In this document: piece by piece, positions 1 to 56,937 of the stretch
How the letters are laid out: every line of letters begins with the position of its first letter
Position numbering within the stretch: position 1 is the first letter of the stretch
Assembly: GCA_020536535.1 (NCBI GenBank)
Contig: JAHLWZ010000827.1
Coordinates: 1 to 64,000 of the forward strand
Direction of reading: 5' to 3'
DNA length: 64,000 nucleotides
DNA from: Pelomyxa schiedti
Lineage: Eukaryota; Protista; Evosea
Made by a program: the position numbers and the translations under genes
The notes under the pieces: generated by a model
Databases searched by the model: none
What the model saw: only the letters and a program-made list of their open reading frames with translations
What the model was told of the DNA's origin: nothing

Positions 1-100
1 GTCAGTCCCAGAAAATTCAAAAAACCCACCTAATTTCTCCTAACCCAATTTATCTGGTGGTTATTGAAAAGGTCACACACACGAACCAATGCAGAGGGGC

Positions 101-375
101 ATGGAGTCGTTCTGCTCGGTCTTTGGGTGATAGTCCCTGGCCATGATGACCCTCATCACCCTCTGCACGTCGACGTCCGCGGGCAGCGGCGACGGCACCG
201 AGTAGAGGCACACGGACCCCAGGATTTGGTCGTACTCGCCCACCAGCACGAACGTGTACGGGTCGGTCACCAAGTCGGCGACCCCGCCCCCGCCCGGGAG
301 CGCCGGCGACGGCGAAGGCGACGCGGCGGGGATGGCCGGGGACTATCACCCAAAGACCGAGCAGAACGACTCCAT
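101..375. repeat. 44-bp inverted repeat (101-144 and 332-375, one mismatch) flanking a 187-bp inverted coding segment
   Basis: atggagtcgttctgctcggtctttgggtgatagtccctggccat is the reverse complement of atggccggggactatcacccaaagaccgagcagaacgactccat except at 138/338. DYHPKTEQNDS is therefore encoded on both strands. Confidence 0.97.
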
Positions 376-3069
376 CGCCAGCTTCCAGAAAGACACCTCC
401 ATGATGACAAATGACCCTCATAACAACACTACATACTGTTACTATGTCCGCGCCACCATCTTATTACTTACCTCTCTGCTTTTTTTTTTTTTTTTCCCCT
501 TCCCTTTCCCCCTACTATTATTCAAACTAAATATTCTCTTATTCAGATACACCGATTTCATTTGTTTGATATCCTTGCTCGTGGCAACGTTCGGCAGCTA
601 TTCATATGCTATTTGTGCCGTGATGTAAGTTTAGTCACCAACAGATTTGCCGAGTTCATACCTCCTTTTAAAAAGGCAAAACCCTCTTGTCAATTCGTTG
701 TTAGTAATTTTTATCTACCCAGGCAGTGGAACTCCTAAAAAAAGGAAACATCAGTGTTGCCAAATCTGATATTTGTAAAAGGCTAGTGGATTTGACATAT
801 ACCTACGAAAAAGTACTCTACTCTTTCCTCTTCTTGAATAGAACTTAATAGTGATAATAAACAGATGACAGAAGACCCTAGCAAAAGGACTACAGGAGGT
901 CCACCCTCACAACCTGGAGAAGGCTCAGACAGAGATTCCACACAAGCAACAACTCCAGTGAGAATACCTCTTCCAACCATTTTTCTTTATTAATTATTCA
1001 CTGTAACAGCCAAATGAGATTAAATCAAGTATAACTGATTTGGAACGGATACTTAAATGGATATGCAGTGTCACAAATTGCCTGCCACCTGTCCCTGCAC
1101 CTGACTACACTGTAGGCAAGAAAAACCATTTGTGACGGATGGGGAAGTGGGTGGTGGGCGGAAGTTAACACCAGAACTCATTTAAAAAAAAAACACGAAC
1201 AGCCTGAACCCATATGGAGATTGAATAAGATTGAAGGCAAACTTAGGCCTATAGAAGTAATTTGTGGACCAGAAACTGTGGCCACTATGAAAAATATCTT
1301 GAAAGACATATTTGTATATTTTTCTCGACCTCATCTTGTACTTGCTGTTGAAGATTTGGAGCGTCAATTCCTTAGTAACATCATACAACCACTCTTATGG
1401 GCTCATACCTTTTCCACCCTTAGGACCGCAGGCAACACATCTAGCTCTTGGGAAGCAAATTGGATGCAACTTTGATGTTGATATATTCGAAGATTCTACA
1501 ATGGCAAGTCAGAGATCAACTGTGCCTCCAATCTCAATTAAACCAACTCCCCTTGCCTTTGGCCCACCCCTTGACGAAGAAGCTCAACATACTAAGTTTG
1601 AAACATTAGCGGGTATGAAAACCTATGGAAGATACCAATTCACTTACCAAGTTTTTCTTTCCTTCTCGAATAGAATCACCCTTCCCTGCCCTCAGTGTTC
1701 CTCATTTTATTAATAGTGCTCCTCCGTAAGTTAACTTCTGATTTGTTCTTCCCTTACTGGGCGTTGTTGTCTTAGATTGCAGTATCAGACATTTGCTAAC
1801 TTGTTTTTACTACAACAAAAACCTGGGTTCCCTTACCCTCCTGGCACCAACCTTCTGGCTCTTTCCCGAAATGTGCCTGAAGTTAAGCATATTATTTATT
1901 CTCTTCTCAAGGGAAGGACTGTGGTTGTTTGTGGGAAAGATATGCAGTATGCACGACCCAATCAATTCAATACTAATGTTTTAAGTACTGTTGAAGCTAT
2001 TGTCCTTGCACTTGCGATTTTTGTGTGTGGTGTGAGTGATACAATTTGCACGTGCAGAAGTAACAAGTTACCTCCCCTTCACATTCCGGACTTGAGCACT
2101 CTCCGCCTTGTTGGTGTTTTAAGTGCACACCAATATGCGCCAGTAAAGGTGTGTGTATTTTCCATCTCTTTTTGTAACACTTTAAATAGGAAAATGTTTC
2201 CTTATTCCTGCTGGATACAAAGGAAATTATTGCCCCACGGTATCCTGAAAAAGCAGTGTACATTGACGATATCCTATTTAAACATGAGTGGCCAGTAAGA
2301 TCTCTGAGTACTTTTCAAAGAAAAAACCCGCCTCATCCAGGATGATCCTACATTCATTTCGCATGTACACAGGGTACTGTTGAATATTGCAAATAGGGCA
2401 TTTTTATATTACCACCTTTGTTGTGTTGCAATTTCGCAGCTGACTGTTGTCCCCGAGATACGGAGGTACTGGTTCTTTTCTTTTTTGCTTTTTAACCTTC
2501 TTTGAAGGAGACGAAGAAGTTCCTCTCCCACTTCCATTCTTCTCCCAGGGGAGATACCTGTGCAACGGCCTGGAGAATTAGCACCCAACCAGAGTTCAGC
2601 AAGTGTACCTAACTTCGATAAACCCTTTGCCGGTAATGCTGAATGCTTTTACTATCATTTTTTCACTTTTTTTTTTATATACTGACCTATCTCGGCTAGG
2701 AAATAACCCCCATCCCGCTCCACGTTCTCGCCAAGCAAATACGGGAGCTCACAAATTTGAAATTAAAAAATACATGTGCACTGACAAGAAGCCCACAGAT
2801 ACTGCCGAACGTGAGCAGGCCTGTACGGATTTCTTCAAGAAGTATTGTATCTGTGATGGAGACAAGGAAATTCTCATTGTATGCAGCACCATCAAAGCAC
2901 AAACAGGGATACACAACCTAACTAACATTGTCACAATTAGAACATGGCCGAAGTTGTAAAGAAACAACAAGCCCAGGAATTGCACCCCACAATGTCCCTT
3001 CCCTGTAAACTTGACCTCTCTCCCTGCACCTCCACAAGGTTTCTCTCCCTACCCACCTTCTACTCATGA
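332..3069 (+). CDS. SMCR8: SMCR8-like longin/DENN protein (C9orf72 partner family), multi-exon; its N-terminal segment lies inverted at 145-331
   Basis: Spliced translation DYHPKTEQNDSIASFQKDTSMMTNDPHNNTTYCYY|IHRFHLFDILARGNVRQLFICYLCRDVSLVTNRFAEFIPPFKK|AVELLKKGNISVAKSDICKRLVDLTYT matches the SMCR8 longin pattern (VHHLTLYDLEARGFVRPFCMAYIS...ASECLKTGN...KLKDLDYT). Also LNKIEGKLRPIEVIC, HIIYSLLKGRTVVVCG and C-terminal DKEILI|NMAEVVKKQ. Stop TGA at 3067-3069. Confidence 0.85.
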
Positions 3070-56837: not shown

Positions 56838-56937
56838 NNNNNNNNNNNNNNNNNNNNNNNNNNNNNNNNNNNNNNNNNNNNNNNNNNNNNNNNNNNNNNN
56901 NNNNNNNNNNNNNNNNNNNNNNNNNNNNNNNNNNNNN
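56838..56937. other. Assembly gap (100 N)
   Basis: Run of 100 N, probably a placeholder of unknown true size. Confidence 0.99.

Follow-up and report, generated by a model that had tools for sequence, protein, structure and literature searches.

The first 338–341 bases of contig C827 in the public Pelomyxa schiedti genome assembly are very probably a composite chimera that formed in vitro during phi29 strand-displacement amplification (MDA) and was kept at a low-coverage contig end. These are also the first bases of the window, by which we mean the whole 64,000-nucleotide stretch analyzed here (C827:1-64000), and they cover the start of a gene whose identity as SMCR8 is supported by its sequence. 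The original prediction held that the start of the SMCR8 coding sequence is flipped between inverted repeats and listed three options for its origin: a real template-switch allele, an invertible switch, or a whole-genome-amplification chimera. The flipped start does exist in the sequence as assembled, most likely as an artefact and not as a biological feature, and it is the last of the three options that our evidence supports.

As assembled, the 5′ end of the gene is built around a 44-nt inverted repeat, a claim that our analysis bore out. Its arms, at 101-144 and 332-375, pair at 43 of 44 positions (98% complementary) across a 187-nt spacer, with the sole mismatch at 138/338, and the quality of the repeat is far above chance expectation. 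The left arm, on the minus strand, is an inverted copy of a native exon 1 stretch that also stands at 332-375. Between the arms lies an inverted piece of exon 1 (145-331, minus strand), whose 62 codons belong to the longin-like N-terminal region of the protein. The minus strand of this piece carries an open frame, ...DPYTFVLVGEYDQILG...RVMRVIM, that extends across the left arm as ARDYHPKTEQNDS (also given as ...RVIMARDYHPKTEQNDS), and the plus-strand translation from 332 reads MAGDYHPKTEQNDSIASF.... When 145-331 was flipped by script, a single continuous open frame resulted, confirming that the minus strand of this segment encodes the missing start of the gene and that a flip restores one frame. 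Again as predicted, the in-frame codons after the ATG at 101 are TGA TAG. GC content is 66-68% in the 5′ region of the gene versus ~40% downstream.

Past the second joint, described below, the gene continues in its native orientation. The remainder of exon 1 (342-445, plus strand) ends at a GT splice donor in phase 0 and is followed by intron 1 (446-546, plus strand, 101 nt), across which the RNA joins 445 to 547 with GT..AG borders. Exon 2 (547-675, plus strand), with Pfam and solved-structure matches, holds the predicted longin-domain stretch with its D..ARG..R motif, and intron 2 (676-722, plus strand, 47 nt) comes next. An exon that would encode the DENN part of the same gene lies further on (1777-1946, plus strand), where an RNA contig from run X4 splices 1946 to 1986. 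At intron 2, the joint in the RNA contig (673 to 721) is ambiguous over 5 letters that fit both sides, and shifting the cut by 2 gives GC..AG borders for this 47-nt intron; the remaining introns seen in the gene are GT..AG and 39-101 nt long. Far downstream, the window contains a run of 100 Ns (56838-56937), a scaffolding gap that fits the RNA-based scaffolder of the genome paper.

Identity searches were done on single exons. Exon 2 (547-675) matched the Pfam family PF11704 Folliculin at E 0.029, below the curated cut-off, and aligned with residues 136-176 of human SMCR8 (6lt0_B) at E 1, while the exon stretch 1777-1944 aligned with SMCR8 residues 707-739 (6lt0_B) at E 0.11. For each of the two exons, SMCR8, the longin-DENN partner of C9orf72, was the only solved-structure match. 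These alignments give weak but specific support for an N-terminal longin domain with the D..ARG..R motif at 547-675, and they suggest that a C-terminal DENN part (1777-1944) is present and colinear with the longin part. Since the two weak matches to SMCR8 occur in colinear order, we consider the name sound. A best match of the exon at 1203-1373 to insulin-like growth factor II (E 0.02) was taken as chance, and a six-frame search of the whole genome with Pfam Folliculin, which is too coarse for short exons, gave no match, even at the SMCR8 locus.

The flipped peptide (103-330, minus strand) was searched separately. Against solved structures it returned no SMCR8 at E up to 10, only chance matches. 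In a feature search its nearest clusters were, weakly, the N-terminal longin regions of the NPR2, DENND11, C9orf72-like and Folliculin families, which may fit a longin start at the level of the superfamily and which we treat as a lead only. The earlier identification of an SMCR8 longin start therefore stands in one part, the identity of the gene, by way of the two downstream exons; in the other part, the flipped peptide itself, the match is to the longin superfamily and not to SMCR8 by sequence.

As evidence from sequencing runs we used Logan contigs from four public runs of one study, two of them DNA-like (X1 and X2, from one sample) and two single-cell RNA-seq (X3 and X4), with the RNA coming from other cells than the DNA. 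A search of the assembly (G000) traced the left flank of the repeat to another contig: positions 1-108 are identical (100%) to C822:107187-107294 on the minus strand, a donor site that is internal to C822, a 109-kb contig. Past ATGGAGTC, C822 diverges from the window. Because C822 matches 1-108 and then differs, positions 1-100 (plus strand of the window) are foreign, and are not the upstream region of the gene. The last eight letters of the match, ATGGAGTC at 101-108, form joint 1, a microhomology that the gene's minus strand has in common with the C822 piece; both source sequences contain these 8 nt but have different letters to the left and right. Across 1-108, the contigs from DNA runs X1 and X2 extend as C822 and unlike the window, and the assembly as well as the two DNA runs show C822 intact across the donor site. 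The 108-nt foreign piece starts exactly at GTCAGT after ...GTTCTAG in C822 (C822:107294, minus strand), and this GTCAGT resembles the 5′ splice site of a C822 gene. That C827 begins at this base may simply reflect the start of one read.

The transcript of the gene is colinear. A 650-nt RNA contig (X3 record 8) spans 1111 down to 339 with zero differing letters and with four introns removed (GT..AG), indicating that it represents spliced mRNA. Beyond 339 it matches the window's other strand at 138-237, which means that in the mRNA sense the "inverted" piece comes first and 339-445 follows directly. Around this joint (138 to 339), 37 letters are compatible with both arms of the repeat. At the lone mismatch between the arms, the RNA has the base of 138, part of an Arg codon, and not that of 338; the left arm thus carries the base of the mRNA, and in the native exon the position corresponding to 338 is A. 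One colinear gene in the mRNA had been named in advance as the mark of an amplification or assembly artefact, and one colinear gene is what the RNA contig contains. A biological flip of the SMCR8 start, as originally proposed, is contradicted by this colinear mRNA and by the foreign left flank.

A DNA contig located the second joint. X1 record 2 (180 nt, depth 2) matches 230-341, after which come 68 letters unlike the window. Its departure after 341 places joint 2 within 332-341, where the only mismatch of the repeat falls, and not at 331/332 as had been assumed, and it indicates that the minus-strand molecule natively extends past 331 via ATGGCCGGGG into the upstream region. Joint 2 is a 9-of-10 microhomology between ATGGCCGGGG, whose letters at 332-341 are those with which the minus strand runs on into native upstream sequence, and the exon's own ATGGCCAGGG (332-345 vs the reverse complement of 131-144). 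Over 30 letters of this upstream continuation the frame stays open in the sense of the gene. With an 8-nt and a 9-of-10 microhomology at the joints, the earlier preference for a double template switch over clean recombination proved well placed. A second partial match (141-159 vs 399-424), put forward as a possible primer of fold-back, was at chance level, as 15% of shuffles yielded such a 14-mer pair, and it lies at neither joint.

Coverage is low throughout this region. Word depth in the DNA contigs is 0-2.9 over 81-480 vs 17-22 from ~1100 onward, and the joints 108/109 and 341/342, where depth is 0-2.9, were absent from all Logan contigs of X1 and X2. Intron 1 contains a T run at 481-496, and the DNA contigs of X1 and X2 break nearby. 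The stretch 470-513 combines this T run with a CT-rich tract, and the contigs of both DNA runs begin only at 514; the stretch is a likely cause of the break.

In the native gene, all on one strand, the upstream region is followed by the 187-nt piece, which leads into the 44-nt stretch and the remaining part of exon 1. The assembly instead begins with the C822 piece, goes on with the minus strand of the 44-nt stretch, of the 187-nt piece and of 10 nt of upstream region, and switches to the plus strand at ~339. The 44-nt "inverted repeat" arises where the last two of these chimeric segments overlap on opposite strands, and the inferred native arrangement contains a 10-nt imperfect inverted match in place of the 44-nt arms. 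A search of the assembly with the 30-letter upstream continuation from the DNA contig gave zero matches, indicating that the true 5′ end of the gene and its start codon are missing from the assembly.

The history of the DNA bears on how such a sequence could form. The DNA of P. schiedti was obtained from seven micromanipulated cells by Illustra Single Cell GenomiPhi whole-genome amplification, sequenced with Illumina and Nanopore on the amplified DNA, assembled with SPAdes --sc (k 21-121) and scaffolded with RNA, giving a genome of 52.4 Mb in 5337 scaffolds (PMC8887013). The assembly that we searched has 52,367,397 bases in 5337 contigs, and its source DNA was amplified by strand displacement with phi29. 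In MDA, 85% of chimeras are inverted and most join segments <10 kb apart, with 2-21 nt of complementarity at the joints (Lasken and Stockwell, 2007, PMC1855051). The start of C827 resembles these inverted chimeras in several respects: it derives from phi29-amplified single-cell DNA, joint 2 links the minus and plus strands of one exon ~200 nt apart, the 8-nt and 9-of-10-nt joints fall inside the 2-21 nt range as expected for priming at short complementarity, and the unrearranged form is present in independent material, namely the colinear spliced RNA contig and the DNA contig that passes 341. It differs in having two joints within 240 nt, the first of them to a different contig, and in being known from an assembled contig and public contigs rather than from counted chimeric reads. 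Joint 2 has the form of a textbook MDA chimera, and joint 1 fits the less common type in which the joined segments are distant or separate.

We propose that strand-displacement amplification of single P. schiedti cells with phi29 generated a chimeric molecule of three segments. The first would be 100 nt of an unrelated locus, internal to C822. The second would be the minus strand of native SMCR8 exon 1, entered at the 8-nt microhomology at 101-108 and followed in reverse across the equivalent of 375-332, across the 187-nt piece and for 10 nt into the native upstream region. The third would begin at the 9-of-10 microhomology at 332-341, on the plus strand of that exon, and lead into the real gene onward. 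Segments 2 and 3 would overlap by 44 nt on opposite strands, producing the apparent inverted repeat, and the single-cell assembler would have retained the chimera as a low-coverage contig end. Several points count against this model: two joints in 240 nt are unusual for one molecule, the DNA contig with the upstream continuation, at depth 2, could itself be chimeric, the RNA derives from different cells, and the contig-end survey described below falls short of significance.

Among the alternatives, a purely computational misassembly, in which no chimeric molecule ever existed and unrelated paths were linked at the contig end by the assembler or by gap closing with long reads, is improbable. 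The defect does lie at a contig terminus, with a coverage trough beside a T run, neither joint occurs in the Logan contigs of X1 and X2, and the assembly combined Illumina and Nanopore reads of amplified DNA, all of which such an error would accommodate. However, the 8 and 9-of-10 common letters are too short to join paths at k 21-121 without spanning reads, the native gene offers no 44-nt inverted repeat on which the graph could fold, and the geometry is that of a known type of MDA chimera. Since 8-10 common letters are too short for a path in a de Bruijn graph with k>=21, reads that spanned the joints must have existed, and we infer that the joints were made by physical chimeric molecules rather than by the assembler alone.

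A real rearrangement in one cell or nucleus, mediated by microhomology in the manner of FoSTeS/MMBIR, with part of exon 1 inverted and duplicated and an insert from another locus, is slightly less probable again. Complex joints at short microhomologies and inverted duplicated segments are features of FoSTeS/MMBIR events, and microhomologies are present at both joints here. Pelomyxa is multinucleate, and because RNA and DNA were taken from different cells, the mRNA data are compatible with a rearrangement confined to a single sequenced cell. FoSTeS/MMBIR products sit in the DNA of the organism, however, whereas here the mRNA and a DNA contig are unrearranged and the source was amplified in vitro. 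The mRNA is colinear with zero differing letters, a DNA contig from the same sample shows the native continuation beyond 341, and C822 is intact at the donor site, both as assembled and in X1 and X2. Amplification with phi29 yields exactly such molecules, and the defect ends at a contig terminus, as do two others described below, and sits in a coverage trough. On these grounds the option of a real template-switch allele found no support in the colinear mRNA or the phi29-amplified DNA. Its more specific form, a somatic template switch in one of the seven cells or their nuclei that gave an inverted duplication of the SMCR8 5′ end together with 100 nt from another locus, we regard as slightly more doubtful still.

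Recombinase-driven invertible DNA switches, for example those of the bacterial fim or hin type, likewise have an inverted repeat around a segment with the start of a coding sequence, but a programmed switch of this kind, with a recombinase flipping 145-331 between the 44-nt arms to toggle the full-length protein, has next to no chance of being correct: the near-perfect inverted repeat that flanks the coding start is the overlap of chimeric segments, its mismatch marks a joint, the left flank comes from another locus instead of the region upstream of the gene, the native locus holds only a 10-nt imperfect inverted match, the RNA shows a single, colinear orientation, and a plain flip leaves ATG 101 with two stops after it; a native left flank, a second orientation and a working "on" state after the flip are all missing here.

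To place the probable amplification chimera at the start of C827 among other contig ends, we surveyed 1.5 kb from each of 100 other contig ends and 69 internal stretches. A separated inverted repeat of at least 30 nt was found in 3 of the 100 ends vs 0 of the 69 internal stretches, a difference that is not significant (Fisher p 0.15-0.27). At two of the 100 ends, and in none of the 69 internal stretches, unique sequence from nearby recurs in inverted form, with one arm flush with the contig terminus. At the start of C845, positions 1-120 are the exact reverse complement of 1082-1201, and at the end of C805 the last 59 nt are the exact reverse complement of 895-953 (end-stretch coordinates), 490 nt upstream. 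Both have the same geometry as the start of C827. The C805 end is also a second composite contig end, as its positions 1277-1362 equal the first 86 nt of contig C663 at 100% identity. The C845 stretch at 1082-1201 lies within an apparent AAA-ATPase gene.

The third of the ends with a separated inverted repeat, that of C813, was dropped, as it belongs to a dispersed repeat family. This repeat (C813 end, 481-1170), probably a small transposable element, is ~690 nt long and contains a 47-nt perfect inverted repeat (481-527 and 654-700); many contigs carry it, in dozens of copies that are 76-98% identical.

The flipped start of SMCR8 carries no biological weight, and its value is practical. In the public P. 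schiedti assembly the 5′ end of the SMCR8 gene model is damaged, and a protein annotated from ATG 332 would be without its first longin strands. Some 2–3% of the sampled contig ends bear neighbouring sequence in inverted copy. Close to contig ends of this assembly and of other amplified single-cell genomes, fold-backs, inverted repeats and "flipped" parts of genes should be presumed artefacts unless reads or transcripts support them.
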